DNA from: Pavona decussata
Taxonomy: Eukaryota
Assembly (NCBI GenBank): GCA_977016875.1
Contig: CDRNST010000115.1
Location: 1 to 64,000 of the forward strand
DNA length: 64,000 bases
Direction of reading: 5' to 3'
The position numbers and the translations under genes are program-made. The notes below the pieces were generated by a model. The model ran no database searches and was not told the DNA's origin. It saw only the letters and a program-made list of their open reading frames with translations. Each line of letters starts with the position of its first letter. Position 1 is the first letter of the stretch. Of this stretch, positions 43,622 through 63,597 are shown piece after piece.

Positions 43622-43974
43622 TTAAAGTCGACTGTCAATGTTTAAGTCCAGAGACTGTTCAGGTATATTCTTCAAGGAGACCAGTTGAACCATTTCCTTG
43701 TGTTCATCAAACTGCTTCTCCCTAAAAGTTGAAACTGTATCGTTGCTGCTGACAATGCTGTCTCGAGTACCTTCACATCGCTTTTCAGATTTCATTCGCT
43801 TATTCAAATATTTCATCTTTGCTTTCATCTCCCGAATTTCACGTTTCCGCTTCTTTATAATAGGACCTATCTTCCTTGTCATGTCTCGATAGAATGAGTC
43901 CACGAAATTCTTCATCTCTCTAACGAGGGACTCTTTGTAAGCAAATTGGTTGGAAGAGGCCTTTAACTTTGTAT
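43622..43974 (-). CDS. Last exon: cytoplasmic basic coiled-coil tail ending DSRL*
   Basis: ttcttcag|AT ACA AAG; phase 1 matches upstream exon. Confidence 0.8.
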
Positions 43975-46900
43975 CTGAAGAAAAAGAAAATGATATGGCC
44001 AACGAAAATTTACGGGCATTGTTCGATGCTGGAACGGAAGTTACGTACTAGCTCCTCTCCACTTTTTTTTTAATCGCTAGGCAATAGCCGTGGTTACATT
44101 GCACCGTTTATAACGATAATAGGCTAATTTAGCAACAGAACGGGAACGTAATTTGAGGACGCGAGAGCTCGCGGAATAGTCTGAACACGAGTCTATTTCG
44201 ACTATATATGGGCATTCTTGATGCGCACACCGTTATTAACTGACGTTCCCGTTCTGTTACTAAATCAGCCTAATAGCGCTCTAACCACTTCCAATCATGT
44301 ATACCTCTTACTAACCCACTTTGTTGTCAGGCATGTAAGAGTGAGTGAGTGAGTGAGTGTCCGTAAACAAACAGGTCTACAGCGCGTGCACAGCACTACC
44401 CACATGTACGTAATGCGTACCTATTTTTTCCTCCTTGATTTCGGGTGGCCCATAAATAAAGAGAAAACGAGGATCCGTACCTTACGGTAGGGACCGAGAA
44501 AACGAGGTTAGTAAGATATTTACTATATCTCTGAGGTTAATCGGGCATCAAACTTTCAAATTTAGTGGGCCGTACAGTGAAATACAGCCCGCAAAACTGA
44601 CCAATCACATCGTGCGTACTGAGAAACATGATATATTTATTTACTAATTTCTTTATAAACGTAATTCCATTTTGACACAGCATTATGGCCCCTAAATGAC
44701 ATCTAGTTGAGGGAAGATATACTTTCTTCAAACCCGCCATTTAAGGAAGTCACATCGTGTCAAACTCCAATTTAGTTTAATATCACAAAAGCAGCCGCGG
44801 ATTAAAATAAAAATTATTACTTTGCACGTAGAGTTTGGCATATTCTGATTTATAATATAAAGGAGGGAAATTCAATTTCCTACGTACAGCGAAGAATCTT
44901 GCTTGCAGTCACATTAATGAACCAGCACAAACCAGCATCTGAGACAAAATTGCCGCTTTATAATTATGTCTCAAACGCAATTACTTACTGANNNNNNNNN
45001 NNNNNNNNNNNNNNNNNNNNNNNNNNNNNNNNNNNNNNNNNNNNNNNNNNNNNNNNNNNNNNNNNNNNNNNNNNNNNNNNNNNNNNNNNNNNNNNNNNNN
45101 NNNNNNNNNNNNNNNNNNNNNNNNNNNTACTTTTAGTCAGTCAGTCAGAGTGAGTGAGTGAGTGAGTGAGTGAGTGAGTGAGTGAGTGAGTGAGTGAGTG
45201 AGTGAGTGAGTGAGTGAGTGAGTGAGTTAGTTAGTTAGTTAGTTACCCCATTTTTCACCTTTGTTTCTCCGCCGAATGTATACAAAAAAGTGATAGGAAA
45301 GTCCGGTTGTGATAGCCATTCCCAAGAGACCAAACAAAGAAGCGATGGAGATGACGAACATTTGCGATGAACCATCAAATAATCCTGTACTTTTCTCCAC
45401 CACCGCATCTGCCGCAGGTGCCTGTGGAAACCAGTGAAAAAATAAAAAAGAAATATTTTGCTCAGTCCATATTTAGTTCATTAATAAATAAATAAGTTCA
45501 TTAATAAAAAGTTCATTAATAAAATTAACTGTCTAAATAATACGTGAATGTCATCATTATGGGTACCTCGATGTTCGACCGAGGGTGGTGCTTCAACATT
45601 CGAAATTTTACGTTCAGCTTTTAAGGTGGCTCACAGTGGTTTCAGCACTTTCTATCAATTCTAATTTGATAGATCAATCTACCACTCTTAGTCAATTGAT
45701 ACTGTACTTATGGTATAAATGCCTGGTCATTGGTAAACAGTTTTTTTTTACTTAAGAGATTACCTAGCAACAATATAACCTGTTAAAAACAGCCCAAATT
45801 TGAGCTTTAAGTGATAATAACTCAAAAACGAGATAAGTGCCCCAATTTTTTATTTTTCAATTGTAAAAACAATAATTTAAAGGTTTGAAATTTTCGAAAA
45901 TTTAAGGTGGCCCTGAACCCCTCCCTACAAATATTTCTAAACTCTGCATGAAGTTGTATCTGTACATGTGATCATAATCCCCTAATAAGAAATGGGGGTC
46001 ACCAATATTGTTTCTGAGTTATAACTAAAATTAGAGGTCCTTTAACTACTTTACTAATAACTGTGGTCAGCGGTCGGCTTGCGAGATGGCGGCGGATTTT
46101 TCGAGCTTTGAGGAAATTCGCAACTCCTAGGTGTCCTTTATCCCTAACTTCATGTTAGTATCTTGCCATGTGCCGACTTGTCAATTTATTTTAATTATTT
46201 GTTGTTTGGCTAGCTGGCTTCTCTAGCCCTCGAGGTTATTCTAGGCAGCTAGTGTCGTATTGTATTTTCAGTTTAGTTATTTTTGGATCCCTTCTGTAAC
46301 TGTTGGTACATATAAAGGTGGTGTTGCGCTTTAATACCACTATTGTAGTATCAACCGATAAAGATTGGTAGTAACGATCCATGAAATTAAAAGAGCTGGG
46401 AACCGTTGTGAATCACCTTAATTTATTTCCTCCCCTCCATGCTTATATGTTCATAACCTCTTATGTTCGTAACTCTTCTTTCAATAGCTCTTATCCTTGT
46501 TGGAACTCAAAGCCGGACAAAAGAGGAAAAATCACTCAAACAGCTGACTCATTTATTATGTAATATATCAAACACGAGAAGGTGTGTTTCGTCAGATATC
46601 CAAACATTGAGAAGTAGGTTGGAAAAACGAGGGGCAGCCGAGTTTTTTTGAACGACTTCCAGGTGTTTGGATATCTGATGAAACACACTTTCGAGCGTTT
46701 GATATCGCTTCTCAAATGATCAATAATTCTTGGAGAAATTCAAGGCTAAAGTTGGCAAAATTTTATGGTAATTAGGATCACATATCCAAACCACGGTCAC
46801 GGTAGTGATTTTCTTTGTTTTCTCTTGATGAATTATTAATGAGTTTGAGAATCATTATTCTCATCTATTTACTAGGCTTAAACAAATATACCATAACATC

Positions 46901-49900
46901 TATCCGTTGCGCAGGTTACCAACTATCAGTCAATCTTTTCAAACACCTTTTCAACTGGAATTTTGGTTTCTGTTCGTTTAAATAGCTACCACTGAAACCT
47001 CCTTGTTGTTTACATACACTTCTCCTTTTAAAAACAAAAAATGCTTCTTAACCTCAATTGTCTTTGTCATATTCCTGATGGTCTGAAATATTTCACTGAT
47101 GTGCATGTCGATGTAATCCCGACATCTTTGTTCAACATTCCTTGCCGCCCCTGAAAGCACCACTCCATAACCAAATGGCCGATCAAGAATCTGCTTCACA
47201 AACACGCGCTCGTCAAAAAGCGTTTCTTTGTGCTCAGCTGCAACGTAAGTGTCAACCAAAGCGCCCTGGATCTCGTCCTCTTCCAAGGCTGTTTGAATGT
47301 CATCCAAGTTGTTATATTGGCGTTCTGTAAATTAAATGATCAAGGAAGAAAACTGTATTCATTAAAGATGTTTAAATTCATGACTTACGATGATTTGTTT
47401 TTTGGTGGGGAGGGGAGGGGAAAACAGTCGGACAAAGTATGGTGAAAAGAAAATATGTCATTTGCTAGCATCCACTCCAGATAGAGTAGTAATGCCACTT
47501 TCAACTTCCTGCTACAGAAACCCAAGATAAGCACTTTCTTGTTGATCTTCCGTATATTTTAGAATTCAGTCGGACCGAATTTATTTTCCACCATGAATAT
47601 CCTTAGCTATTCTTATTTTAATACTTCTTGCCTTCATTTTTCTCAGGGTCGAGAAATCTGCTGTCAAATGTAGCAGCCAGAAGATTTAGATGCCTTTCAT
47701 GGTTTCTACACTAGTAAAATAAGAGCGTTTGGTATCTCCTTTCGGATTGTGTCCCCAAATTACAATGAGATTTTCCTAAGCTATAAGGCATTGACACGTT
47801 AATAAAGTTTTTATCTTATCTTATTTACTTAAACACACAACCGTTTGCTCTGACAGCCTATGACGCAGACGCTAGTCTCTTCTTCTACTGTAATGTTGTC
47901 TTGTCGGAACTAAACGTTCGGCGTGCACAACCGATGTGTCCTAGATAAGTGTAAGGTGTCTCGAGTTTGTTTACTACTATTGTAAAGTAGATGTTATTGT
48001 CACGTTAATAAAGTTACTGTTGTTGTTGCTCACTTGTGTTTACTCTCGCGTTCTTGAGAATTCCCAGGCGGTATTCTGTAGAGTTCTGAATGGCCCCTAC
48101 CTAAGTTGTAAAAATTAAAAAAAGAAAAGCATTATACGAGGGCTAAAACGTGACAAGACATACTTTTTCCCCGAGTATGTCTGTCACTGACTGAAAATAT
48201 AAATCTATCCTTTATTCACCAAGCTTCGCATTTATTTTACAAAGGACATCTCATTGACTCTCATTGAGTTTACAAGCGTCAGAGGAGGGGGAGTGGCCTA
48301 GTGATAAGGGCGCCGGACTTGAAATCCGGATGTCCAGGGTTCAAGTTCCGCCTCGGCCACGCTTGTAAATAGCGAGGTGGGATTTTTAACATGTTATGTT
48401 CGATTTGATAATTATTTGTTTCCCGTTATTTCTGAGTGGAATGCCTGTAAACTAGCTGTGGATAGCTAAGTGCATTCCACTATAAACAAAGCATTTATTA
48501 TTTTATTTATTTTTTATTAGCGTCCAACATCGTTTCAATATAGGGACTAAAAATGTGCTCTCTCGGGGCTTTGTTGTTCAACAGAAATATCTCCAAAGTA
48601 AACCTTGTGATAAGTTCTCGAGTACCCCGCGAGCAGAGATCCTTTTGAACTTCCTAGAAAATCGGGAAGATCGTGAGAGTAGTCTCTCGATGGATGATGA
48701 TATTACAATCAAGCTCACAATGGAAGACAAACGAGAACAAGCCACACTTTTATTACACGTGTGTTATTCTTAACTCTTTGAGCAGTTTTATACATTGATT
48801 TGACTGGCCCACAGTTAGTTATACGAACTAGTTTATGTCGGACGCGTCAACTAAGCCATTACCTATTCTAGAAAACAGTTATCCTTGCTCTACCCCTGGC
48901 GTTGATAAAAAAAAAAAAACAAGAAAGAACTTTTTTCTTTGTAACCCTTGCGGGGGTACAATTTTGAACTTACCTCTCTACCGTAGAGCATAATTTCCTT
49001 GTCCACGGTAAGAGATGTCAATGTCGTGGCAATATTACCAATCAGAATAGATATTATTACGATTCCAGCTAGTGTCCACATTATACCAAAAATACGTGCA
49101 GTGAGGGACTTGGGCGCTCGGTCACCATATCTGCCAAAAACAATCAATCAAGGAATTTAGATGAGACTAGGAATACAGTAGAGATCACTTTCCAAACCAC
49201 CGAATGTTCTTCAATTGTCGATGAAAGAATTTAAAATAGGTTAAACACTGATGGCATGTTATCATTGAGACGCAACGGATTATGAATGTAAGTGTTATTT
49301 GTATGCTCCAAAATTTAAATAGTGAGCCCGTTAGGAAACGTTCCACTCGCGTATTCCTTTGTCCATGTATGAAGAAAATGTTACGACCAATCAGGAGCCG
49401 CGTGTTATATTTTTTGACGTGTGCGTAGTGGCAGCGTTTCGTTTAGCGGAGCTACAGAGGGAGATTTTACCAGTTTGACTTCAGATAATTCCAACGTTTA
49501 AGTAAATTTGTTTAGCAAAAATAACATGATACAAATCAACTCCGAAAGCGTCTTTTGCAGAATAACAACATGATAAGTTTTTAACATCAATTGGAAACTC
49601 GGAAAAAATCCGAGCCCCAGATGGGATTCACGGAGAGTCGTGGGTTTAAATCCCATCTGGAGCTCGGATTTTTTCCGAGCTTCCAATGAATGCGAAAACT
49701 TATCATGTTATTTCTACAATACTCTGGTTGGATGGTTGCATCTCTGATATCCCTTAACGTGACTGCGCGATTCAGTTATGAGTCATATGCCTGTCTGATA
49801 TGCCTTAATGTGACTGCGTTGTGCAGTTATAAGTCATATAGGCCTGTATTGATTTGACTGTGTCACTGCGTAATGCAGTTCTAGTCAAAAACCCACATTT

Positions 49901-52900
49901 CCCCCTTGCAAGCCAACTCGTTCGTAAATACCTTACGCGCGCACCTCCCATGAAGTATTCTATGTTTATTTGTGTACCTCGGTTATGAGTAAGAGACTTT
50001 CCATAACTTCGTACTCATGGGTACCTTTTACTGATTTAATTAATGTCAAGTATTTTAATATCTCACCCAACTGTTGTCATGGAGATGAAAGACCACCAGA
50101 ATCCTTCACCAACGCCTTTCACAAAACTGGGCGGAAATTCCCCAGGGTTGTACCTGGAGTCCTGTTATAAAATTGCAATAGGAATTTTGCAGTGAATTCA
50201 AATGACAGAGAGGGATGAGGACCATGGTAACGATAAAAAAGCAGCACACAATGATAAGGATAACGTGACGATAGAAGACGAGTATAATAAGGATGGGAGT
50301 GACAACAGGGAGGGCGGGATGAGGTGAAGGGGGGGGAATGAATACGAAGAGGAAGATTAAGAAGGAAAACAAGGGATAATGAGGAGAAAAACAAAGAACG
50401 AGTGTACAAGGACAGGGATAAAAATTATGATCCGGACTACGAAAAGATACAAGAAATTAAAACGTTGTTCATATTTCAATACACGCCTTCTTTAAGAATG
50501 TTAAAACCGGCGTTAAAACATGGTTTCATGTCTTAAAGGCCTTGCATCCACAGACGTTCACAAACAACTCACTCGAAGTTATGGACTCCCAAAACAAAAG
50601 ATTCAAATCAGTCTATCCAATCGGAAACAGAGAAACTCTCTATGAAGTACTCACCAAAAGCCAAATGATAAATCCGGATATAAAAGCCGTGCATGTCGAC
50701 AGCACCAAGAAGGGAAGGATATCCAAAACTGCGTTTATCATGTTCATAGCAGCTGTCCCAGGAGGCCTAGTAGTGGCAATAAAAGCCACACCGGGGGATT
50801 CCACCAGGTTGATGTATGCATATTCCCGCAAGTATTTCGTGATGTATTTGTTTCCGTATATTGGAAAACTGATTTGTGGAACCTCGTCGACGTCTGCGAG
50901 CACTTCTAGGACATTTTTCTTGGCTGAACGTAAACCTTTCCCATTTTCTATAATCTCTATGATAGTGTTGCCGTGTGGGGGACATATTCCACAAGCCGCA
51001 TACACCATGTCAGTGACAATACTGCTGAAAATTCCCTCGAGCTTTTTGTCCTTCTCGTTCACCTTAAGGTATGGAGAAGTCGTCCAGTAGTTTGTGTAGA
51101 GAACTTTTGGACAACGACAGGTTTCTTAAAAAATATAAGACACTTGTTAAAACAGCAAAGGTTATTTATCACCCTTGCGAAACATGTCTAAACAATAACC
51201 TAAACAGATATTATAGAATAATTATATAAAGTCAATTTAAAATGATACAAACAGAGAATGTCGTGTTAGGGATAACTGAGCAGCCAAAATGTGCCGCCTT
51301 CGCTTAAATACATTATTTGTATGGGAATATTTTTTATTACTTTTTTATATTTTTTCCCTCGGAAAAAAGCTCAATATGGTACTTTTAAATGATAGCAGTA
51401 AGGTATATATTTTTACCACTTTTTGCCAGAACTAGGTTTCATAAACTGAAGATTTGTTTCAAGACGATTTAAGGCTTGTGTACGTACCAGCATACACATA
51501 TTTACTGTAAGGTCCCACTCCTTTCTGTGTAGATGCAGCCACTTTAATCCTGTAAGTCGAGTACGTTTGGACTTGAAGCGGAATCCAGAGTTCATTTGAT
51601 TTTAAGGTCACAGTGTGCTCTTCTGCGTCAAAAACGTCTCTCTCTGCTGTTTTCATTCTTTGATACTTCACAGAATAACCAGTTAGAAGGCCGTTGACGT
51701 GACCGTCAGGAACTGGACTCCAGTAGATGTTAATGGACTTTTCTGAAGTAAGGTTTTTAGCTCTGACATTCTGCGGAGGTCTGGTAGGGACTTGAATGTT
51801 ACAAAGTGGGAGGGGAAATTTATAAATTAACTTCTTTAACATATAAAGAATATACTCTGCAGAAGAATAAAACAGTAAATAAAGGTTTAAAGCAAAAGAA
51901 ACAATTTATCTCAATACAGAAGGTAATTGAAAATTTGCTGGTAAATCGAGAAAGAAAACTTTTGTTCAAACCAAACATTCGTTTCCACGCCCCATCCACG
52001 CAGCACCGCAGTTCCTTTAGAAACTAACCCTTATCCATTTCAAAATTCACAGTTTTCTGTGGTCTAATAAACCATACAATGACGTTATTAAGATGTTCAA
52101 AATTTAAGTGGAACCACGGGCCGCAGTTGAGTGGTTTTACTGCCAAGTTTGAAACATTTTATGGTGTCATTTTATGGCCTATAAGACTTGAGATTATAGA
52201 AAACTGTCGTCGATTTTATTTGTTTCGTTCGTGTTCAGTCATTTATATGCTCAGATTTCTGTCTTATTCCTCTGTAGGAAGTTAAGGCTCAGAGGGCAGA
52301 TGCTTGAATGAATAAAGAACGATAAGAAGTAGAGGAGTAGAAATGTGTGAGATGGTGAAATACTTGGCGCTTTAGCTTGGTCTGTGAGGCTCTAGCAACT
52401 GATTGTTTCATTGGTGAGAATAATTGCGATAAGCGTATGTCGTTGGGCTGGTAATAAGGCATTAAAGAGGAATAAAAAGGGTATGTGGCGGGTGAGGGAA
52501 ATTTGAGGATGTATTACTTAATTGCTCTTGTAAAGACCATCCTAAATGTTCTAAAAACACATAAAACACAAACTTGAACTACATTGTTTTATCCTAGTTG
52601 TTGTTGTTGTTTTTCTTTCTTTTTTTTTATTTTTTTCACAGGTAAAGTAAGACCCGAGAATTTACAATCCATGTAAATGCACTCACCATCGCCCCAAGTA
52701 TAAGAAAACGAAGAATATTTCTCGCCACAGCCCTTGGAAGTCTTAGCACAGACTGCTACTTTGTATCGAGTAAAATACAACAAGTCACCTAAAACGACTT
52801 TAAGTGTGTTTGCATCCACTGTTTTGTTTTTCCAGTTCAGCGGTGAACCATCGTCTTTGGCAAACCAAACCTCATATCCCAGGAGCGTCCCATGTACGTA

Positions 52901-55900
52901 CGTTTGGCTGATAGGTTTCCAGGACACACTGATTGAACTAGAACTCGTGGATTCGATAATAGTGTTTGGGGGAGGCTCACTTGGGACTAAAAGCAAACAA
53001 AAAAGAATCGTTTTAGTATAAATGGATAAATACAATCTCTGGTATTATAACTATTTTTTTCAAAAACTCAAAGCAAGTTGAGCGCGGCCTAGACCTTTTT
53101 TTAGCTTCTTAAGCGTCACCTTGATAAAGTTAAGTGGGCTAGTGACTTTTCCACTGCTCTATTTTCCAACTTGTTTAGCTTTTAGTTATTTTGAATAACC
53201 CGTTGCCTACATTCACAATCTAAGTGGAAAATTTGAAAGTAAGGCAATTGAAAAACAATAAAAAAAATTGTTGTTTATTTATGTTTCTATTTATAAAGAG
53301 TTGTTGGTGACTGTTGGAGAATTTCGCTGTATTTTAGCCAAACAATTCGTTGACACTCACAGCTATTGATACAATAAGGTGAACAGAGACCCAGAAACAA
53401 CACGAGAACAGCTTCTACTGGGTGTGAACAATCAACTAAATTCTTTACAAAAACTGGACATGTCAAGCCTACAACATCAGTCAAGTGTACACATTGAAAG
53501 TTTACCATCTTCCTGAGTTTTTAAGGACACTGGTTCACTAGAGACTCCATTGCCAAGACTCGTAAAAGCAAACACGCGTAATACGTAGTTTGTAAACTTG
53601 TCCAGATCGTCCAGTGTCACTTCTCGCTGTGATGGGGACACTGATTTCATGAAATCCACCTGAAACTTTCCGGTTACTTTTTTGTACACGATGGCATAGC
53701 CGCGAAGTGGTGCTGCATTTAGCTGTGTGACAGCAGACCATTTTAGTGTAATGGATGTTGAGTTGGTACTGCTTGCTTCAAGTATCACAGGAGGTTCTTT
53801 CGGTACTGTCGAGAAAGGACATAGTTTGCAAATGAAATACATAACCAAGACTATGGTAGAGAGCTAGGCGTCACAAGCTAGAATGATATAGGCCTGAAAG
53901 AATGAAAAGGAAACGAATGATGGTTAGCGTATTGTTTGACGTAGCGCTCAGCATTTTCTTTGTCTTCAAATGTGTACGTAAGCGATGTGTTAAGTTGTCT
54001 TTGTATCCTATCTTTCAGGATAACGTTATAATAAATCTGACCTTCGAAAGGAAAGTCCTTTTACGGTAATGGGAATATGTGGATTAAGCAAATCTAAGCG
54101 CCTATGGGAAGTATAACAGGGACTTTAAGATACGAGGACATGGCGGCTTTTACAACGTCGCAACCGAGAAGACTCTGGTTCGAGGGCGGGAGAATAAAAT
54201 TTAAGATTCACAACGCGACGAAGGTCAAAAACAACTATGTTGTCGAGGTGTTCGATTAGCTTTATACTAATTATGGCCATAGGATTACTAAGTGCAATCG
54301 TGGAATTCTGTGCCTGGCATTACTTGACGTCTACGCCAATGCAATTCACAACAAATGGGCCGCTCTTGAAAATTGCTTCGGATTTATATATAGATGGAAC
54401 AGTGCACCCAATCTCCCGGCCTATCATAAACCAGAGAACTGTATATGACGGACATGACCGCGTTCACGTACTCAAATTCCACTGAGTCTGTACATTTTTA
54501 TTTCATTTATACCGAAGGAAGTATGGACGACTGACGTTACGATATTGGCACTATCTGATCTCTACGGCGACCTAGAAAAATTCGGCTTCAATAATATAGT
54601 AATAATAACTTATATTGTACCTTTTAACATAGAATGTTCAAAGGCGCATTACGGCATGAAGTATAATAAATAGTTAAACTATGCATTAAAAGCTAATGTA
54701 AAAAGATTTTAGTGAGAATTGAAATACTGAAGTGATCTAGATTTCGTATCACAACAGGTAAAGCATTCCATAGTGTGAGAGCCGCGGCGGGAGAAGACCT
54801 TTCCCTTAATGATTGCAACATTTTCCCACAAGGGAAGTGTAGTAAAATTCCATTATCTGAGCGTAAGTGATAGGTAAATTGTTGCCGGGCATTCTCCTCG
54901 ATAGGAAAGGAAACACGTTTGTATGGTGATCCGGCCTATCCACTTAGGCTCATCTACCGGCACCATTTTAAGTTTCCAAACTTTAAGAAGAACTTAAAAA
55001 TTGGCAAGGTGTACGCTGTTTGTGTACTCCTAAGAAATGCCCTGACTTGCCTTTATTCAAACACAACGACAGAATATTTTGGCCTTGAACCGCCCATTTT
55101 GTACAACTATTTAAATTAAAGCTGTCAGGTACATAATGTGAATAAATGTAGTACATCCAAAAGAAAACAAGGGGGCCCTTTTCATTTCATCTTGGTACAT
55201 CTGAGATTCAGTCTTGTGTATAGGAAAGTGTCACAAATGGCTTGGACTGTTATCGGGGAGCATTAAGGCAGAGAAAGCTTCCTTTCAGCCCCTAACTGAC
55301 AAGAGGGCGTGCACAATAGTTTTGAGCCCAAGCTTTGCCATTTACCAGCTTCCTCGCCCCACAACTGGGCAATTTAGCAAAAAGGTCTGAACTTAAGGTG
55401 TTTGAGTACTCAGTATTTACAAAGGTACGAAGAAAGCAGCTGTTCTTAAATCGCAATTTTGAACCAACAGCCTGTTCCTATATTTTTAAGGTTGACTTCA
55501 AAGCAGAGGTTACCTTAATCTAATAAAGGAATCAAATAGTCTTATGATATTTCCAATCGTGTGCACAAACAGTAGCTCTATACTTAACCCATTTTCTTCT
55601 CTTTCCTTCTTTTCGATTTTTCTCTTTTGTGGTCATCCAACAATGAGCGCGTCCCTATAAGTAAGGGTTCAACCTCTTGGGAAAGTCTTTTGTTCAATTA
55701 GGCTGAGTATAAGTTTCAGGTATAAAGATCAATCTGATATTCTTAATTTATTGTTGCTTCTGTCCTCCTGTTGAAAATAACGTTTCTCGAATCTTTCCAC
55801 TGAAAACTATCTAGCTAGAACTGATGCACCTGGATATGGGATAAATCTGCTCGTTATACCAGTTGATGAAAATATTTTTTAGAACACTGTGTCCACAAGA

Positions 55901-58900
55901 CATTCCAAACGTTTACAAAAACATTAATTTGTGTCAACTAAACTTAACGCGTGTCTTGGAACCTTGCCCTTCACACTCCACCCTTCAAGAAAATTTTAAA
56001 ATCATGCTGGCTTAATATCAAAACTTTTTGGGACAGTTATTTAAACAGAGTCTAACTTAAGCCGCTGTCTATCGTTCTTGTGTTTCTGACAACTTTTCTA
56101 TTGCGTTTAATCTGACATGTTTATTAATCTCCATTTTTCGGCTCTTCTCCTGGTCCATTTTTTGCTACTCTGCCTCAGCACTTTCTTCCAGTGGGAATAT
56201 TTTCTCCAACAGTTTTTCCAATTCAGTGGGCTCGATTTATATCAGGCCTTATGCCATTTGCCTTTTCTTTACCTCTTAAATTCGTTTTATGCCTGTTTTG
56301 GAATATTCCAACATTTTCCCAAACTGAATGGAGCCTTTCTTCGAGGCATAATGATTTAGGTTAATAATTTCTTGGCATAGGATCCAAGCGGTTGCGGGCG
56401 TCTTGATGACTTTCCAGTAATTAAAATGCACGTTACCCCATGTCTTTTTGTTCATCAGTTCCTTTACTGATTCTGTGCAGGTTACGACAAACAAGGAAGG
56501 AGAAAATTTCAATTTTCCTCCCCCTCCCAAGCTTTATCCAATTTCACTAATATTGTGGCTGCGCAGGGTTTGCAAATCTCCTTATTTAAAGTTTATTTAC
56601 GTAAAGGAGTATTAAGTCACTACACCTTAAAAAACAAAATTTAACAAGGTAACTACGTCTCCAGTGATTCATCAATGATATTTAATAATGACAATAAACA
56701 AGTCTAAGTACGAAGATCAGCCTTTCAAAATTAGCATATGCCTGCATGCACTTTAACTCTTGCGACCCTACATTTTATTGGCATTTTTGCTGCAAGTTGT
56801 TAGTTGTCAAAGAATAAAAATTCGTGTCAATGTTCATAAACTGCAAAACTGAAAGTTGATGAAAGGGCGTTTGGTTACTTACCATATCTGCTTATAATAT
56901 TGAGTAATTCTGCTGTATTATCACCTAATCTTCCTTCTGCCATTTCCTCTTGCAAGAAGACAATCTGTAACGAGTCTACTGCGACGTAGGTGATATTTAA
57001 ACTGGCAATGACACTTCCTTTCCTTTGGAGGGGAAATTCAAAGTAAAAAGTCATTCTATCCAGTTGGCCCAGGTTGTTAAAATAACGAAGAACTTTATCC
57101 AGCGAAGGAATCGCTGTCAAGAGGATAAATGTACCCCAACTAATAGATTTTATCCCATGGAAAGCGATTAATACACTGGATAAAGTTCGTGTTGCCATAT
57201 CTAACCGTCTTCTTTTCTTACGAATCACTATTGAAAAATTTGAACCCGAAACACTGCCGAGGAAAAGCGTATCTAGTTGGAAACTTGATATTGATAAATG
57301 AGTTGTAAAGGCGCGTATCCGAAACTCCCCTCATTGAAAATTAATCAGGAACTTTCTCTCTGGCGTATCGTTAAACACAAATGCTGCTTGTAGCGATTCT
57401 GATTTTGTAGGATTGACAATATCGTTTGTCTCAGTAAGAACCTATTAATTGGCTACCTATTGAGTGACCAGTAAAATCACGTCAAGGATAGTGCCTCCTG
57501 ATACAAACGTATTTTTGAACAGTTTACGAATTTAGTTTTTGACTACGCGAGAAAAGTAGCTTTTAATACGGACTGTTGGAATCCAAAAAATAAATAAGGG
57601 GTAACCAAGTATTTTTCAAAGATAACAAAATAAAAATAAATGGCTTTAGCACTACAGCGTTAATTGGGGACACTATAAATCGGTGAAATAAATATACAAA
57701 CTGGACATAACATTTAAAAAATCCCAATTGGTGGAATCCAAACAAAACAATTCCAAAAAGCGGTGTAAACTGCAAAACAATGTATGGCATTTGTTCCCCA
57801 AATTAAAGCTTAAAATTATTTCCGAAGAACGTGTGGTTACCCCTACTTTTCGTTTTGGATTCCAACAACCCTTACTGGGATCTGCTTTTCCCCCACAATT
57901 AAAAACCACCCCAAAATACTTTTGTCTCAGAAGGCAACAGTCTTAAGAAACCCGACCATCCGAGATGCGCAGGACGTATGCGCAGTAGCAAATAAAGGCA
58001 TCGTCCTCAGTAAAGCCCCTTCACTGAGAGGCCATCTTTATAAGGTGGCTGCGGCCACCATTTGGCCGTCCCAAGGAGGGCTCTTCTTCTGTGTTTACAG
58101 TGTGAAGCGGCCACCAAGAATTTTTAAATTCTTGTCTTAAAAGACACACAGTTTAGCTTTTTCTTTATCCATGCTCCATTAGAAGGAATTAGTTCAAACC
58201 TTTCTTTTTAAATTTTGGTTCCCAACCGTTTAATTGTCTACTTACTTCGAAGCAATTATCAAAAAAACTTTGAAGCTTTGAGTAGTTTCAGCAGTTGTTA
58301 CAAGCCTCCAAACGTTCCTCAAAACAAATAAAGTTACGTTCCTACTTCGCCGTATGGTAATTTATGGCGAGCCCCTATATTTAGCAGCTACTTGCAGAAG
58401 CGACTGCTTGTGGGGCTTCAACCGTTTCTGACAAAACTTGAATGTTATGGGAAAAAGGAAAAGATAACTTGAAACTGATCTATATGATCGTCTAGTCAAA
58501 AGAAATATAAGACTGATATCTACCTCAGCTCTAAGACTTCCACGTTGATGATACTTTCACCTTTCATTTTGTATAAATTGATAATCTAAAATTGAAAATA
58601 AATAGGATAAGTATGCCATTTGTCTGAACATTAAATCGTTGAACCCTTCACTAACAAAAACGTCCAATGATAAAACCGACGAAATATTGAACATAATTTT
58701 CTCAAACAGCATAGCGAAAGGGGTTCAGCTTTCATGTGGTTGATCACGCACTAAGCAAAAGGCATCTTGTGCATCACAAGGGACAGCACCACAGAAAAGT
58801 GTAACATTACAGGTTTTTGTGAATAATTACATAATTACAACTTAGTATCTCGTCCACAGAGAAAACGTGGTTTCCCCCTTGTATAAAAAGTAACGCACAA

Positions 58901-61900
58901 AGCCACGGATGAGAAGAAAAAAAGAAAAGGCAAAACAGCAAATTTCTGTAAAATCAGCAACTGGAAAGGTTGACTTCAAGTCTCCAGTATCGGTAGGGTC
59001 TTAAGGCGGTGCTAAGGGAGTGAGCGCCAACTGCATGTCATGCGTGTGTGAAAGAAAACTCGATTGCTAAATGGTTCCAATGCTTACGTATTGTGTTATC
59101 TCGTTTACAAATGTCCGATAGTCGTCACTTGTCGGGTCGCCAAGGTCATCACTCCATGCTTTAGTTCTGAACCTGATCTTGAAATTTATCTCATCAGCTG
59201 ATAAAGAATTAAAAAAGATACGAAATGTTTAATTTCACTGCAGTTTTTCCTTTACATAAACAAGACAATACGAAGGTTTGCGCACGACTAATATGAGAAT
59301 GCGGCATAAACACCTCTGACTTAAAAGATGTATTATATGAGCTTTCTTGGGTTTTAAAATTAATATTTTGGTCTTAAGTTTGAAAAGGGTTGATGAACGT
59401 TTTCAGTGTACCAGAAGTATTTTTCGATATTTTAATGATCCGATCAGTTTCCCTTCATTTTCTTTCGATGCGTAGTAGTAACTCGTTAAATTTTCGAACG
59501 AACACTTTGTTATTTGCCTTCTCGTATTCTCGTGGCTTAGTTCTGTAGTCTCGAAAATTAAAGTTATACTGACCTGGACATTTGTTCATATTACAGGACT
59601 CGGTGTCGGTTGCTGGACCGTCGCAGGTTTTGCCCCCATCAACTGGTGATGGATTATTGCACAGTCGGGTCCTTGTCCTGGTTCCAGTGTTACACGGCTT
59701 ATTACAGTTTGGCCAAGAAGTCCAGTTGCCCCAGTTACCATCAACTACACAACAAATAAATAGTAGGCGTATAGATGTGGCGCCATGATATCATTCATTT
59801 AATGTAGAACATTTGTTGTTTTCGTGCAAAACAATGCTGCTTGTTCCCCCTGCCATTTTTTCTGTTTTGATACATTTATGTTAGACATTACAATAAAGTT
59901 ACCACACATTCTTAGATGTTGATTCCGACGATAACATTGCGGAGAAATAGTCAGTTATTGAAAATATTTTCTTCCAAACTAAGTCTCGTTTGGCAGTAGG
60001 TTTTCAGACTCGTGCACCTCTCTTGTAATGAGACAAGTATGTAACAAAATAATACAGCAACGACAATTAACAACATGGTAAACTTTTATTAACCCTTTGA
60101 CCCCTGAAGACGCCTATAGGCGCGCTTTCATATATGGTGTACATTTTGCTCTAAAAAAAGGGGCCAAAGGCACTTTCTAGGCCCCAGGCCTCCTCTACTA
60201 TTGCAAGAAACAACGTGATTCAAAATGGCGTCTATTTTAGCTAGATTTCTCTAGTTTTCAGGGGGAAATTTTCAATTTTTTTCGAAGCATTGGTTACAGA
60301 TGTCATCTGGTGATTTAAAAATGGCATCCTTCTACTCAGACATGGAGGAAATTCATCGAATTGTGATGGAAAGACCCGACATTAGTAACGTTTCGTAGGA
60401 GTACAGTTTCGAGTACGAAACCGCCGATTATTCTTCCCCAGAAGAGACAGAAAATGTGAATATTGTCGAAACATCAAGAGAGCAGCATCTCATGCACGTA
60501 AAAATCGTGATGGACAAACATCGAGATGGAAACCAGCTCGGCAACAACGCTGTAGAAATGAAGGGAAGACTCTAAACCTGAATCAGAGCGATTTGGATTT
60601 TTTATACAATACAAAATAACCACAATTTTCAGGCCCCAACGATTGACCGACTCATGCCTTTGAGGTCGATATCAGTCCGACTATATTTTTTGACAAGCTG
60701 TTTTCAGGTAAAGTGTGATCCAAGAATGAAAACGATTGCTGATTGTTGTAGCTTATATAGTATTCAAGTGATATACTGATAGTTGGACATCAGTAGCTTG
60801 CATGGATGGTAATAAACTTGGACCCATGACAGCAAATGTGATTTTTTTCTTTTTTGGCGGACATTTTGAATGACTAACCAGACTAGTTAATAATTAACAA
60901 CATAAAGTTTACATTTTCAAAATGCTCATCTCATCTACTTTCTAAAAATATATGGTTATGTATGGTTTGGATGAAAACTTAAGCTTTTATTAGCCATTTT
61001 CTCTGCCATGTCAATTTTTAGCAAAACTTAGTAAAAAATTCAGGGGTCAAATGAAGATTGACCAACAGGTGTAAATATTTAATGGCTGGCAATTTTATGT
61101 TTGCATGTCAATTATGTTGATGGAGAAGCAATTTATTTAAATCTCACATTGACAAAAATTACCCTTTCTTTTGTAGCAGATTAGCGTCTCGTTAACGAAA
61201 CAATCTCGTGTAAGCAAGATCGATTAAATTGCAGCCTTCAACAACAAAAATTGACTTGAAAGGAGAAGAAAATGTTGTCAAACCTTCACCAACACTTTTT
61301 GACGCAATAACTCTTGATGGTGGCACCAAAACACTATCTGGTGCTCGTGATCCTGGGTAGACAGATTGAGGCTGCTTTGACAGATTCTTGGTTTTAGACA
61401 CTTCAACTGGTGACAATTCGCTGCCTTTAGACAATTGCACTGGTGACCATGACAATATTGATGGATATTTTGTCTGTAGTGACGGTTGAAGTTCTGTATT
61501 ATGTTGTGTCACTGGTCGCAGTACAGATGAAGACTGCAGTGAAAGGGAGGATACTCGTTTCATACTTTGAGGTGTTGATTGTGATATCTGTTGTGTTGTT
61601 TGAGGAAACCTGATCGCTTGTGACGTAGACGATGGAACATTTGCCAGTTGCACTAACGATGAGAAGAGTGGACGTGAAGACTTTTGTTGCAGAATCTCAG
61701 ATCTCGATTCTTTCAGTGACGGTTGTGGAGACGGCTGATACGAAAGTGATGTTTGTGCTGCTGACTGTAATGATTGGGGTGAGGCATTTTGTTTCGACAA
61801 TGACTGTAGTATAGGTGAAGACTGCTGTGATACTTGTTGAAAACTAGCACTTTGGGGTGTATGTTGTAAAGCTATTGGAGACACAGGAGAAACTGTGATA

Positions 61901-62462
61901 GACACAAGTAATGACAAATCTGAATAAATCGGGCCATTGACATGATTAGAGTTATTTGATTTTTTTTTTTTTTCGCAAATCCGCTTTCCCCCTTCCTGTC
62001 AATGAAGTCGTTCAATGTTTACGTCTAAAGAAAGTATGGGAGGTTTAAGGTACGACACTGTAGCTCTCCGGCCTCTCAGAATTACTACGTTTATCGAGTT
62101 TTTCTCATAAAAACAAATCATGTCTGTGCCAAACCATTCCAAAATACTTCTTAAAGATCGGTGGATGCGTAGTTGATATGAATGAAGTAAACACGCGGCA
62201 TCCAAGTTATATCTATGCCTATCTCCAGATATACATCAAATGTATGACTAAAGGTTATCTGTATCATTGTTACCGAATACTAACAAACGTTATAAGTTAT
62301 CTGAACCAATGTACAGAGTTCTTATTAAAGCATTAATTAACATAAGAAGAATAGTGTTAAACTTATAGCTGGACGTACCACTTGTGCACCGATAATAACG
62401 ACCATTATCTGTTATGACACACGTCTGACCTTGAGGACAGTTGGTTCCACATGTGTTGTTAC
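43622..62462 (-). CDS. Multi-exon gene: adhesion-ectodomain (EGF-like, mucin, TSP1, SEA, 3xFN3) iGluR/GluR0-like channel with K+ filter TTVGYGD; >=16 exons, >=~1230 aa, start exon not identified
   Basis: All exons bounded by AG/GT with compatible phases and no stops; exons listed separately. Confidence 0.85.
44121..44271. mobile_element. PIF/Harbinger-type MITE
   Basis: TIR AGGCTAATTTAGCAACAGAACGGGAACGT / ACGTTCCCGTTCTGTTACTAAATCAGCCT; AAT on both flanks. Confidence 0.75.
44992..45127. other. Assembly gap (136 N)
   Basis: Run of N. Confidence 1.
45134..45245. repeat. Compound microsatellite (AGTC)n(GAGT)n(AGTT)n
   Basis: Directly visible, abutting the splice donor and the gap. Confidence 0.95.
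45247..45421 (-). CDS. Exon: M4-like transmembrane helix
   Basis: APAAD..MFVISIASLFGLLGMAITTGLSYHFFVYIRRR; ccacag| ... |gtaact. Confidence 0.85.
46563..46706. repeat. Palindromic non-autonomous element
   Basis: ATATCAAACACGAGAAGGTGTGTTTCGTCAGATATCCAAACA pairs with TGTTTGGATATCTGATGAAACACACTTTCGAGCGTTTGATAT. Confidence 0.7.
47053..47324 (-). CDS. Exon: S2 lobe of ligand-binding-like domain
   Basis: EIQGALVDTYVA...PFGYGVVL; tacag| ... |gttaag. Confidence 0.85.
48034..48100 (-). CDS. Exon: start of S2
   Basis: VGAIQNSTEYRLGILKNARVNT; cttag| ... |gtgagc. Confidence 0.8.
48283..48519 (+). mobile_element. tRNA-derived SINE, internally deleted
   Basis: A box TGGCCTAGTG, B box GGTTCAAGTTC, (TTATT)n tail. 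Confidence 0.7.
48974..49130 (-). CDS. Exon: YGD + inner (M3-like) helix
   Basis: YGDRAPKSLTARIFGIMWTLAGIVIISILIGNIATTLT; ggcag| ... |gtaagt. Confidence 0.9.
49567..49709. repeat. Fold-back (inverted tRNA-like repeat halves)
   Basis: CTCGGAAAAAATCCGAGCCCCAGATGGGATT pairs with AATCCCATCTGGAGCTCGGATTTTTTCCGAG. Confidence 0.75.
50067..50161 (-). CDS. Exon: pore helix and filter start
   Basis: DSRYNPGEFPPSFVKGVGEGFWWSFISMTTVG; aacag| ... |gtgaga. Confidence 0.9.
50655..51124 (-). CDS. Exon: S1-like lobe + M1 helix
   Basis: TCRCP..SPYL..EGIF..ACGIC..ESPGVAF..ILPFLVLSTCTAFISGFIIWLL; ttaag| ... |gtgagt. Confidence 0.88.
51488..51790 (-). CDS. Exon: FN3 domain 3
   Basis: PTRPPQNV..IYWSPV..GLLTGYSVKY..YRIKVAAST.KGVGPYS; phase 1-1. 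Confidence 0.9.
52687..52986 (-). CDS. Exon: FN3 domain 2
   Basis: PSEPP..SISVSWKP..GTLLGYEV..L..FTRYKVAVCAKTSKGCG; phase 1-1. Confidence 0.9.
53506..53805 (-). CDS. Exon: FN3 domain 1
   Basis: PKEPP..SITLKW..GYAIVY..LDKFTNYVLRVFAFTSLGNG..KTQED; phase 1-1. Confidence 0.9.
54118..55119 (+). mobile_element. PIF/Harbinger transposase remnant (intronic)
   Basis: LENCFGF/IDGTVHPISRP..QRTVYDGH.RVH.LKF, YGDPAYPL, LLRNALTCLY..YFGLEPP; AGGGACTTTAAG end. Confidence 0.8.
54590..54885 (-). mobile_element. L2 LINE 3' end nested in the Harbinger remnant
   Basis: YHLRS..LL..P..RSS..AALTLWNALP..IR and short (TTA)n tail. Confidence 0.7.
56883..57022 (-). CDS. Exon: SEA domain C-part (RKGSVIA)
   Basis: Phase 2-1; GSV motif. 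Confidence 0.8.
58524..58585 (-). CDS. Exon: SEA domain middle
   Basis: IINLYKMKGESIINVEVLELR; tttag| ... |gtagat; phase 0-2. Confidence 0.75.
59088..59197 (-). CDS. Exon: SEA domain N-part
   Basis: FKIRFRTKAWSDDLGDPTSDDYRTFVNEI; phase 1-0. Confidence 0.82.
59574..59744 (-). CDS. Exon: thrombospondin type-1 repeat
   Basis: VDGNWGNWTSWPNCNKPCNTGTRTRTRLCNNPSP..GGKTCDG..ESCN..CP; phase 1-1. Confidence 0.93.
60093..61051 (+). mobile_element. piggyBac-like non-autonomous remnant
   Basis: TTAA|CCCTTTGACCCCTGAA ... TTCAGGGGTCAAA; decayed acidic ORF start inside. Confidence 0.6.
61284..61919 (-). CDS. Exon: Ser/Gln/Pro-rich mucin-like stalk
   Basis: Open 241-aa frame, ttcag| acceptor; donor at 61283 or 61289 (both phase 1). 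Confidence 0.7.
62379..62462 (-). CDS. Exon: small Cys-rich EGF-like module
   Basis: NNTCGTNCPQGQTCVITDNGRYYRCTS; ttgcag| ... |gtacgt; phase 1-1. Confidence 0.7.
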
Positions 62463-63597
62463 CTGCAATGATAGTTTATTAAGTTAATTTGAAACAGTTT
62501 ATAATCAACAGTGGTTCTGACTTTTGATTAAGTAAATAGAAAACCTAAGTGAAAGGTAAAGTGAAAGCTTTTGAACAGCATGCGGGAGTGGAAGAGAAAG
62601 CCAGGCGGCATATTCCTCTGAAGGTATCTTTTCACCAAGGTTGCCTAGCACTGCTATGTCAGTCAATTCGTTGCAAAAAAAGTCGTCAGGGTATTAGTAA
62701 CGTCTCACGCTGTTGCTTTGCCTCGCAACGGATAGAAAATGTACTCTTCCCTGCAAGAATTAATGTATTAGTTCAACAAATGAAAGAAAAATGGGAAATA
62801 CAATATCAATCCCTGATTATGTATTCTTGGACCGTTTCTTTCATTTGGGCTGCGACTAGTAACCAGTTCTTTATCGTGAGCCGTTTGAGTTTACGCCTGT
62901 TTATTACGATTACACTGTATCACCGATTGCTCGGCTCTTTTACTTCAGTGGTTGTAGTTTATAAATCGTCCCAGTCTTTTTTCTTTTCTAAGATAACGCT
63001 CTTTTCACGGTGTTAATGTAATAAATTCATTTTGTAATTATTGAGGTTATTAATATATGCGTACAAATAAGAGAGTTGTTTGTCCATGTTCTTTTGGGGA
63101 ACAATGAAAGTTCCTTGTTTGGAAAGTTACGCCTGCTAGACAGCACTTGTAAAGACTGTTTTTATGTAACAACCAATAACTGAGTTTACGTGTGGACGCA
63201 CATTTTATGTATTTTATTGATTATTAGATTATTTTATTAACGATTAGATAAGTAATTGTAGTTAGGTGTCCCCAATCAGTGTACATTGTATGCTAGCGAC
63301 TTCGACACTATAATAAAGTTCTTATTATGGCCGTAAAAACTTCTGGATGCCCAGATATCCTAAACAATGATTGGGCGGCCAGCCGTAGCCAATCAATGCA
63401 ACGACCAAAGTCCTTACGATTAAAATCCCAACTCCTAATCATAAATATCCCAGTAATTAAATTCTAAAACTATTTACTATCCATAAAATCCTCAATCTAA
63501 ATACTAAAACTTCTGTTCCTCACGATGGAAACACTTAAAAAAAAAGTTTAATAAAACGCCTAATGTCCATTATTTCAAAAGGTTAAAGCGCCTCGCA

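Follow-up and report, generated by a model that had tools for sequence, protein, structure and literature searches.

The window, a stretch of 64,000 nucleotides of the Pavona decussata contig CDRNST010000115.1 (positions 1 to 64,000), carries on its minus strand the exons of an iGluR/GluR0-like channel subunit. The channel module spans 43823-51137 and was traced as a collinear tblastn chain without gaps from two homologues, P0151 and P0004, with Pfam matches to Lig_chan and Ion_trans_2. Its exons encode the S1 lobe with M1 (51137-50655), the pore helix and filter (50161-50066 and 49129-48971), a further segment of the module (48127-48038), the S2 lobe (47325-47044), M4 (45469-45251) and the C-terminal tail (43969-43823). 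As evidenced by Lig_chan, Ion_trans_2 and Ion_trans matches in a window exon and in all long homologues, together with a K+ filter reading TTVG|YGD, the channel core is of the iGluR/GluR0-like type. The window also contains a run of N at 44992-45127.

Three FN3 repeat exons on the same strand (53805-53507, 52987-52688 and 51794-51483; Pfam fn3 E 2.6e-13, 4e-10 and 1.1e-9) lie between the channel module and a SEA domain and are collinear with P0151 and P0004. Directly upstream of the SEA domain a TSP1 repeat is encoded on the minus strand at 59574-59744 (Pfam TSP_1 E 6.9e-12); the 3′ end of this exon is fixed by a transcript joint (59574|59197) and its 5′ acceptor is predicted. The TSP1 part of the mucin/TSP1 cap proposed in the initial annotation thus immediately precedes the SEA domain. 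At 61195-61998 on the minus strand, an open frame of 268 codons that is rich in serine and mucin-like (S 21%, Q 11%, P 9%, T 5%) is a candidate upstream exon. It contains phase-1 GT donors, for example before 61289, and the transcript contig described below extends 452 nt past the TSP1 exon, beyond the mapped stretch. It is plausible that this frame is part of the channel transcript.

The SEA coding region consists of three minus-strand exons, A (59197-59088), B (58585-58524) and C (57022-56883). A 1065-nt transcript contig from run X1, whose organism label is that of the DNA runs containing the window, matches the window with 0 mismatches at a depth of 9.6 and contains the joints 59574|59197, 59088|58585, 58524|57022 and 56883|53805, so that both junctions of each SEA exon as well as the connection of exon C to the first FN3 exon are covered. 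Each of the four introns so defined is bounded by CT..AC when read on the plus strand, and hence by GT..AG on the minus strand. Exon A (..DEINFKIRFRTKAWSDDLGDPTSDDYRTFVNEITQY) encodes β1, a loop and most of helix 1 and aligns with the N-terminal third of the SEA domains of the homologues. Exon B encodes the end of helix 1 and strand β2 (IINLYKMKGESIINVEVLEL) followed by the first two bases of an Arg codon; its orthologue in the coral locus L003 at 4173-4229 is 47% identical and has the identical split codon. Exon C (KGSVIASLNITYVAVDSLQIVFLQEEMAEGRLGDNTAELLNIISRY) encodes the K-G-S turn, β3, helix 2 and β4 and shares 59-61% identity with P0004 and P0151 and 73% with L003. Joined, the three exons yield about 104 residues including VEVLELR-KGSVIA. 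The Arg codon is split across the B/C joint as AG|G and is followed by AAA GGA AGT GTC ATT GCC, or K-G-S-V-I-A (57021-57004, minus strand). This is in accordance with the spliced reading ..VEVLELRKGSVIA.. of the initial annotation, which had placed the motif at 57004-57018. Cleavage of this motif is predicted at the bond joining Gly (57018-57016) to Ser (57015-57013).

Coral metatranscriptome runs X2-X5, which share 7% of words, were also considered as transcript support and were rejected, as the matches of the three that were mapped (X2, X4 and X5) fall on intronic repeats at 54500-55300, 55900-56100 and 57500-58100 rather than on exons. Among the runs mapped (X1, X2, X4 and X5), support for transcription comes from X1 only. 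Rfam and tRNA scans of the repeat-rich introns gave no match. The X1 contig and an exon chain collinear with full-length homologues place the SEA domain and the channel core in one gene, with SEA N-terminal to the channel as first annotated. The order of the subunit is TSP1, SEA, three FN3 repeats, S1/S2 binding-protein lobes and a pore with the TTVGYGD filter, possibly preceded by the serine-rich region. Located N-terminal to S1 and M1, the SEA domain would be extracellular in an iGluR-type topology.

Scanned exon by exon with Pfam, exon A matched SEA (PF01390) at profile positions 6-35 with an E-value of 0.0094 and 16.5 bits, which is below the cut-off, and exons B and C gave no match. Exon C alone, compared with the PDB sequences, retrieved only MinE at an E-value of 1.3, a chance match. 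In the homologues the Pfam SEA match lies directly after TSP1 in each case, scoring 26.9 bits in P0022 (cut-off 26.4), 24.9 in P0019, 23.9 in P0151 and 18.1 in P0004; P0022 is the one homologue that passes the threshold. We compared a family profile, which included window exons A and C, with the PDB and found that the best 7 matches are all SEA entries. ADGRF1 ranks first (E 4.5e-6), and the others are 8hc0_B (the cleaved N-terminal fragment of ADGRF1), mouse TMPRSS 2e7v, MUC1 (6bsb and 2acm), MUC16 (1ivz) and TMPRSS11D.

The fold was examined on residues 48-155 of the Stylophora homologue P0004, which is ~29% identical to the window in exon A and 59% in exon C. The AlphaFold2 model, of moderate confidence (pLDDT 76), shows the order β-α-β-β-α-β with strands at 3-12, 50-58, 62-70 and 93-105 and helices at 27-43 and 75-86. 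Foldseek alone returned SEA domains mixed with generic ferredoxin-like folds; exhaustive VIA-align against 48,161 chains separated them, with the top 5 all SEA at Z 10.3-11.7 and the next match at Z 8.1. Overall, the homologue fold, the family profile and the Pfam matches provide good support that the three exons encode a genuine SEA domain, as the initial annotation had claimed.

In the P0004 model K59-G60-S61 forms the β2-β3 turn, to which the window sequence aligns without gaps. The structure prediction of the SEA loop, suggested as a check at the outset, thus returned the SEA fold with K-G-S on this turn in the Stylophora homologue, although AlphaFold cannot show strain. In the comparison of the family profile with the PDB, the window motif pairs with FRNG-SIVAG of ADGRF1 without a gap, and the motif Gly falls on the Gly that ends the cleaved chains 8hc0_B and 6bsb_A. 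The β2-turn-β3 segment is gap-free against ADGRF1, and the turn is neither longer nor shorter than that of cleaved SEA domains. The coral sequence therefore shows the G-S-[V/I]-[V/I]-[V/A] pattern on the β2-β3 turn that defines the autoproteolytic subclass. GSVIA is the motif of matriptase, which is cut between Gly and Ser (PMC2958558), and GSIVA is the cleavage motif in ADGRF1 (PMC6954182, PMC2830182). The match to a MUC1-type self-cleavage site, claimed initially from the letters of the motif, holds at the level of the turn, gap-free against the ADGRF1 and MUC1 sites. Cutting by furin in the style of Gpr126 was considered and discarded, as there is no furin-type R-x-K/R-R site in the SEA sequence. 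A motif of this kind is necessary for cleavage and is not proof of it.

Homologues from Stylophora, Nematostella and Hydractinia contain TSP1, SEA, FN3 repeats and channel in the order of the window. G-S-[V/I] is kept in 8 of the 10 SEA domains of the family (the window, L003/P0166, P0004, P0151, P0019, P0022, P0067 and P0107), and the carriers span corals, the sea anemone Nematostella and the hydrozoan Hydractinia. Across the 102 columns of the alignment, G, S and V are within the 14 most conserved. Between the window and the coral L003, the five motif codons differ by 3 synonymous changes and 0 replacements, while the residue pair preceding the motif is R-K in the window and S-P in L003, and the three SEA exons are 47%, 58% and 73% identical. 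Conservation of GSV in homologues, which had been set as a check on the motif, is thus seen both across the family and at the codon level. Because the motif sits on the β2-β3 turn of an independently shown SEA domain and is conserved in relatives, it is not a chance match. An N-x-S/T sequon follows on β3 just after the motif, at the same place in at least the window, L003, P0004, P0151 and P0022. Used as the query of a word search, the SEA region of P0004 retrieved P0004 and P0151 and no other sequence.

A clear G-S is absent from the remaining 2 of the 10, Nematostella P0095 and Hydra P0135. P0095 has lost the Ser (G-K) and gained a 2-residue insertion in the turn. In MUC1, glycines inserted beside the cleavage site abolish cleavage (PMC10327162). 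Many family members have no SEA domain at all and retain the channel core. Since some members lack the SEA domain or the motif, cleavage is not required for the channel as such. Public annotation names the homologues only 'contactin-3-like', 'PTPRQ' or 'uncharacterized', and the present finding improves the annotation of these proteins.

These data give good support for a cleavage-competent motif in the window SEA domain, and we consider it probable, if by no means certain, that the domain cleaves itself at G|S and holds the outer cap non-covalently. The mechanism would be that of MUC1, matriptase and ADGRF1 acting on the turn K-G|S-V-I-A. During folding, strain in the tight turn would drive the Ser hydroxyl to attack the Gly carbonyl, and the chain would break between G and S. 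The outer chain would then be a cap comprising TSP1 and SEA β1-α1-β2, and the membrane chain would comprise SEA β3-α2-β4, the three FN3 repeats, the ligand-binding lobes and the pore. As the two chains would be joined solely by the shared SEA β-sheet, tension applied to the adhesive cap would pull them apart and the SEA domain would act as a breakaway or shedding joint. Cleavage, non-covalent retention and release by force are in this sense steps that we infer.

The same conservation could be explained by a SEA domain that stays uncleaved and serves as a rigid glycosylated spacer, with G-S-V kept for the tight turn and the start of β3. We regard this as the less likely explanation, though one to be taken seriously, since the best structural matches include the non-cleaving SEA domains of MUC16 (1ivz, 7sa9 and 8gkl) and TMPRSS6, and P0095 and P0135 manage without a clear G-S. 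For TMPRSS6, which has a GSLRV motif, self-cleavage is uncertain (PMC2958558). However, the coral protein has the full five-residue matriptase site beyond G-S alone and a turn length as in cleaved SEA domains. The coincidence of Ser loss with turn insertion in P0095, and the restriction of motif changes between two corals to synonymous ones while the neighbouring residues changed, also argue against a mere spacer and for self-cleavage.

The initial annotation went further and suggested, by analogy with the GAIN domain of adhesion GPCRs and the Notch NRR, a mechanical or shedding switch, whereby cleavage would arm the channel and loss of the mucin/TSP1 cap would alter gating. One polypeptide does combine an adhesive TSP1 cap, SEA, FN3 repeats, ligand-binding lobes and a pore, and SEA and SEA-like domains have been implicated in force-dependent dissociation (PMC10327162). 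Nevertheless, such a switch is a speculative analogy and seems improbable: the S1/S2 lobes lie three FN3 repeats away from SEA, a distance that speaks against direct coupling to gating, no element resembling a tethered agonist was identified, and paralogues without SEA have the same channel core. The force-spectroscopy study of MUC1 reportedly favoured a protective breakaway over a switch, which also counts against this reading. We are correspondingly doubtful that this is the first self-cleaved two-chain ion-channel subunit formed via SEA in which tension on the TSP1/mucin cap would strip off the outer chain and thereby change gating, surface life or ligand access; if true, it would be a mechanically armed, K+-selective, iGluR-like ligand-gated channel in cnidarians.

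An artefact, either a chance GSV in non-SEA sequence or SEA exons belonging to another gene, might be suspected from the weak Pfam match of exon A and the failure of exon C to match Pfam or the PDB when taken singly, but it is highly improbable and was rejected, as the X1 contig links TSP1 to all three SEA exons and to FN3-1, a single open frame in each of the Logan transcript contigs L001 and L002 encodes SEA, three FN3 repeats and the channel, the domains follow the same order in NCBI gene models of Stylophora and Nematostella, and the profile and fold evidence both identify SEA.

Self-cleaving SEA domains are known from mucins, from type II serine proteases and from a small number of adhesion GPCRs. 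Our literature search found no paper on a SEA module or SEA autoproteolysis in an ion channel. If the cut at G|S is real, the cnidarian family would provide a simple, testable case of a strain-driven breakaway joint from an adhesive ectodomain to a pore, which bears on how matrix or cell contact is coupled to electrical signalling. The paralogues offer natural controls, as they include proteins that keep the motif, one in which it is lost and the turn is longer, and proteins with no SEA domain. Of the Nematostella paralogues, XP_032222948 has GSVIA and LOC5501224 has G-K together with the insertion.

Polycystin-1, with its self-cleaved GAIN/GPS, and Notch, with its protease-cut NRR, likewise have extracellular modules through which an ectodomain is retained non-covalently on a membrane signalling protein. 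GAIN has a fold with no relation to SEA, and the HD of Notch, a furin substrate, is no more than SEA-like; their likeness to the coral protein is one of analogy alone. In MUC1, the sequence FRPG|SVVV on the β2-β3 turn undergoes strain-driven self-cleavage, the halves are held non-covalently, and a mucin-type region lies upstream (PMC10327162). The coral L003 has P-G-S at the turn as in MUC1. In contrast, MUC1 is a mucin that crosses the membrane once, carries a signalling tail and has no channel, and in sequence it resembles the family profile only weakly (E about 0.1).

By sequence, the family profile is matched best by the SEA domain of ADGRF1/GPR110 (E 4.5e-6), within which cleavage has been reported (PMC2830182); 8hc0_B ends at the motif Gly, as expected of a cleaved fragment. 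As in the coral protein, the ADGRF1 SEA domain lies mid-way in a long adhesion-type ectodomain, far from the membrane. The membrane modules differ: that of ADGRF1 is a 7TM receptor, which has a GAIN/GPS autoproteolysis site in addition, and that of the coral protein is a tetrameric-type K+-filter pore with binding-protein lobes, with no GAIN domain seen. Matriptase (ST14) shares the SEA fold and has the five-residue G-S-V-I-A identical to the coral motif, and SEA structures of the TMPRSS family match the P0004 model at Z 10.3-10.5. In matriptase, a type II protease with one membrane anchor, the SEA domain adjoins that anchor, whereas its coral counterpart belongs to the N-terminal arm of a multi-pass channel subunit and is separated from the membrane module by three FN3 repeats.

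The SEA region lies in an intron-rich gene of animal type on the minus strand, in which we read three short coding pieces. Exon A (59197-59088, minus strand) reads ..DEINFKIRFRTKAWSDDLGDPTSDDYRTFVNEITQY, and its donor is GTAAGC. Exon B (58585-58524, minus) encodes IINLYKMKGESIINVEVLEL and ends in AG, the first two bases of a split codon. The initial G of exon C (57022-56883, minus) completes this Arg codon and is followed by KGSVIASLNITYVAVDSLQIVFLQEEMAEGRLGDNTAELLNIISRY and a GTAAGT donor. The minus-strand reading confirms the G-S-V-I-A motif at 57018-57004, where the initial annotation had placed it. The splicing it had proposed is demonstrated by the public read run X1, whose organism label matches that of the DNA runs holding the window. 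A single X1 contig of 1065 nt (depth 9.6, 0 mismatches) joins 59574 to 59197, 59088 to 58585, 58524 to 57022 and 56883 to 53805, and all skipped parts have CT..AC ends on the plus strand, that is GT..AG on the minus strand. Since an intron-less contig cannot derive from genomic DNA, the gene is transcribed and spliced.

Coral metatranscriptome runs were rejected as support for transcription because they contained only intronic repeats. Short intron stretches around the SEA exons (57500-58100, 55900-56100 and 54500-55300) are matched in their contigs with 90-95% identity and at depths of thousands, and numerous loose ends occur at 57960 and 57992. These stretches resemble pieces of an abundant interspersed repeat that is transcribed, and gave no Rfam or tRNA match. 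Elsewhere in the window, two long open frames (3-2153 and 2424-7013, minus) are identical over their first 150 residues, and the short frames around them repeat at a 4860-base offset; a large retroelement-like unit is repeated here in tandem. A series of open frames at 8827-11127 (plus), with endonuclease- and reverse-transcriptase-like stretches in the frame listing, resembles a non-LTR retrotransposon.

Pfam analysis of open stretches places a TSP1 repeat (59458-59790, minus, E 6.9e-12) directly upstream of the SEA domain and three FN3 repeats (53480-53863, 52592-53044 and 51462-51905, minus) downstream of it, and finds Lig_chan and Ion_trans_2 at 48893-49147 (minus). The pore exons (50066-50161 and 48971-49129, minus) read ..GFWWSFISMTTVG and YGDRAPKS.., respectively. 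The resulting filter TTVGYGD, whose G and Y are split by an intron, is of the canonical K+ selectivity type, and the protein has iGluR-type S1/S2 lobes. Using HMMER on 1.84 billion representative proteins, we obtained 335 relatives of the S1-M1 exon at E <= 0.001, the long ones being cnidarian: Stylophora pistillata 'contactin-3-like', several from Nematostella vectensis, and others from Hydractinia and Hydra. The Stylophora homolog P0004 and the Logan coral transcript protein P0151, compared with the window by tblastn, form a collinear chain without gaps from 59715 down to 43823, in the order TSP1, SEA-A, SEA-C, FN3-1, FN3-2, FN3-3, S1-M1, pore, M3, S2, M4 and tail. The SEA exons and the channel thus belong to one gene. 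P0151 derives from a 4.2-kb transcript contig in which a single frame spans the SEA domain, three FN3 repeats and the channel; TSP1 and three EGF-like repeats lie upstream.

The X1 contig reaches 452 nt past the TSP1 exon. A Ser-rich frame at 61195-61998 (268 codons, 47% S+T+P+Q) has usable phase-1 donors and, as a candidate exon, would plausibly provide a mucin cap. Three EGF-like repeats occupy this position upstream of TSP1-SEA in a Logan transcript of a related coral (L001:400-875), indicating that the outermost cap varies among relatives whereas the TSP1-SEA pair is constant. Upstream of the Ser-rich frame, a Cys-rich open stretch at 62293-62475 (minus; ..NNTCGTNCPQGQTCVITDNGRYYRCTSG..) possibly represents an additional 5' exon of this gene.

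Scanned exon by exon, exon A gives only a weak Pfam SEA match (E 0.0094), while nothing was found for exon C alone in Pfam or among PDB sequences. SEA identity was therefore tested via homologs, with the window represented in the profile by exons A and C. Pfam recognizes SEA right after TSP1 in P0022 (26.9 bits; cut-off 26.4), P0019 (24.9), P0151 (23.9) and P0004 (18.1). We aligned eight SEA domains of the family with exons A and C (A2) and searched all PDB sequences with the resulting profile; the best seven matches were all SEA domains: ADGRF1 (E 4.5e-6), the 57-residue ADGRF1 chain 8hc0_B, mouse TMPRSS 2e7v, MUC1 6bsb and 2acm, MUC16 1ivz and TMPRSS11D 8vis. AlphaFold2 modeling of P0004:48-155 with A2 (pLDDT 76, pTM 0.62) yielded the order beta-alpha-beta-beta-alpha-beta. 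Foldseek ranked TMPRSS6 first (E 1.7e-4), with SEA domains mixed with other ferredoxin-like folds; in an exhaustive VIA-align comparison with 48,161 chains, the top five were SEA domains (Z 10.3-11.7; next Z 8.1). The window shares 59% identity with P0004 over exon C and about 29% over exon A. SEA identity is thus well supported for the family and reaches the window's predicted domain through these two exons, with the fold taken from the P0004 model.

In that model, beta2 (residues 50-58) and beta3 (62-70) flank the turn K59-G60-S61. The family's ..fRkGSviasf.. aligns without gaps to ..FRNGSIVAGY.. of ADGRF1, whose autoproteolytic site GSIVA lies in the beta2-beta3 loop (PMC6954182, PMC2830182). 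The separate chains 8hc0_B (ADGRF1) and 6bsb_A (MUC1) both end at the aligned Gly, as is typical of cleaved SEA domains in the PDB. The window motif is identical to that of matriptase (PMC2958558). Its conservation holds in homologs: the turn reads RK-GSVIA in the window, SP-GSVIA in a second coral (L003/P0166), WK-GSVY in P0004, RQ-GSVI in P0151, RK-GSVI, RH-GSVIA and RE-GSVM in Nematostella (P0019, P0022 and P0067) and RP-GSIE in Hydractinia (P0107). Of the 102 columns, those holding G, S and V belong to the 14 best conserved, at an overall family identity of only 20-26%. Compared with L003, the window shows three synonymous differences (AGT/AGC, ATT/ATC, GCC/GCT) and 0 amino-acid changes in the five codons of the motif. 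The two residues before it have changed, as has much of the domain (exons 47%, 58% and 73% identical). Two exceptions to G-S are informative: P0095 (Nematostella) has G-K and two extra turn residues (FREKD-GKVM), and P0135 (Hydra) a degenerate turn with possible G-T. MUC1 cleavage needs turn strain and is abolished by inserted glycines (summarized in PMC10327162). Five residues past the predicted cut, beta3 carries an N-x-S/T glycosylation sequon, N-I-T (56995-56987). At least L003, P0004, P0151 and P0022 share it with the window in the same column.

By analogy with the established SEA mechanism, the window's domain probably self-cleaves. The chain would break between Gly (57018-57016) and Ser (57015-57013) while the domain folds, leaving an outer chain (cap, TSP1 and SEA beta1-alpha1-beta2) and a membrane chain (SEA beta3-alpha2-beta4, three FN3 repeats, S1/S2 lobes and pore). 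The shared beta-sheet would keep the two bound until tension on the cap separates them. The more economical function would be that of a joint for breakaway or shedding, of the kind proposed for MUC1. A channel switch operated by this cleavage, as initially proposed, is very unlikely: three FN3 repeats stand between SEA and the ligand-binding lobes, and paralogs with FN3-only or CUB-Ig ectodomains retain the same channel core.

Our literature search, which combined SEA with ion channels, glutamate receptors or cnidarians, returned no paper on this family, and database names of the homologous proteins are generic. SEA modules of this kind are known; what appears to be new is the host, a K+-filter iGluR-like channel subunit. 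Among known systems, the SEA domain of ADGRF1 is closest to this family by sequence, that of matriptase has the identical motif and that of MUC1 provides the model for the mechanism.
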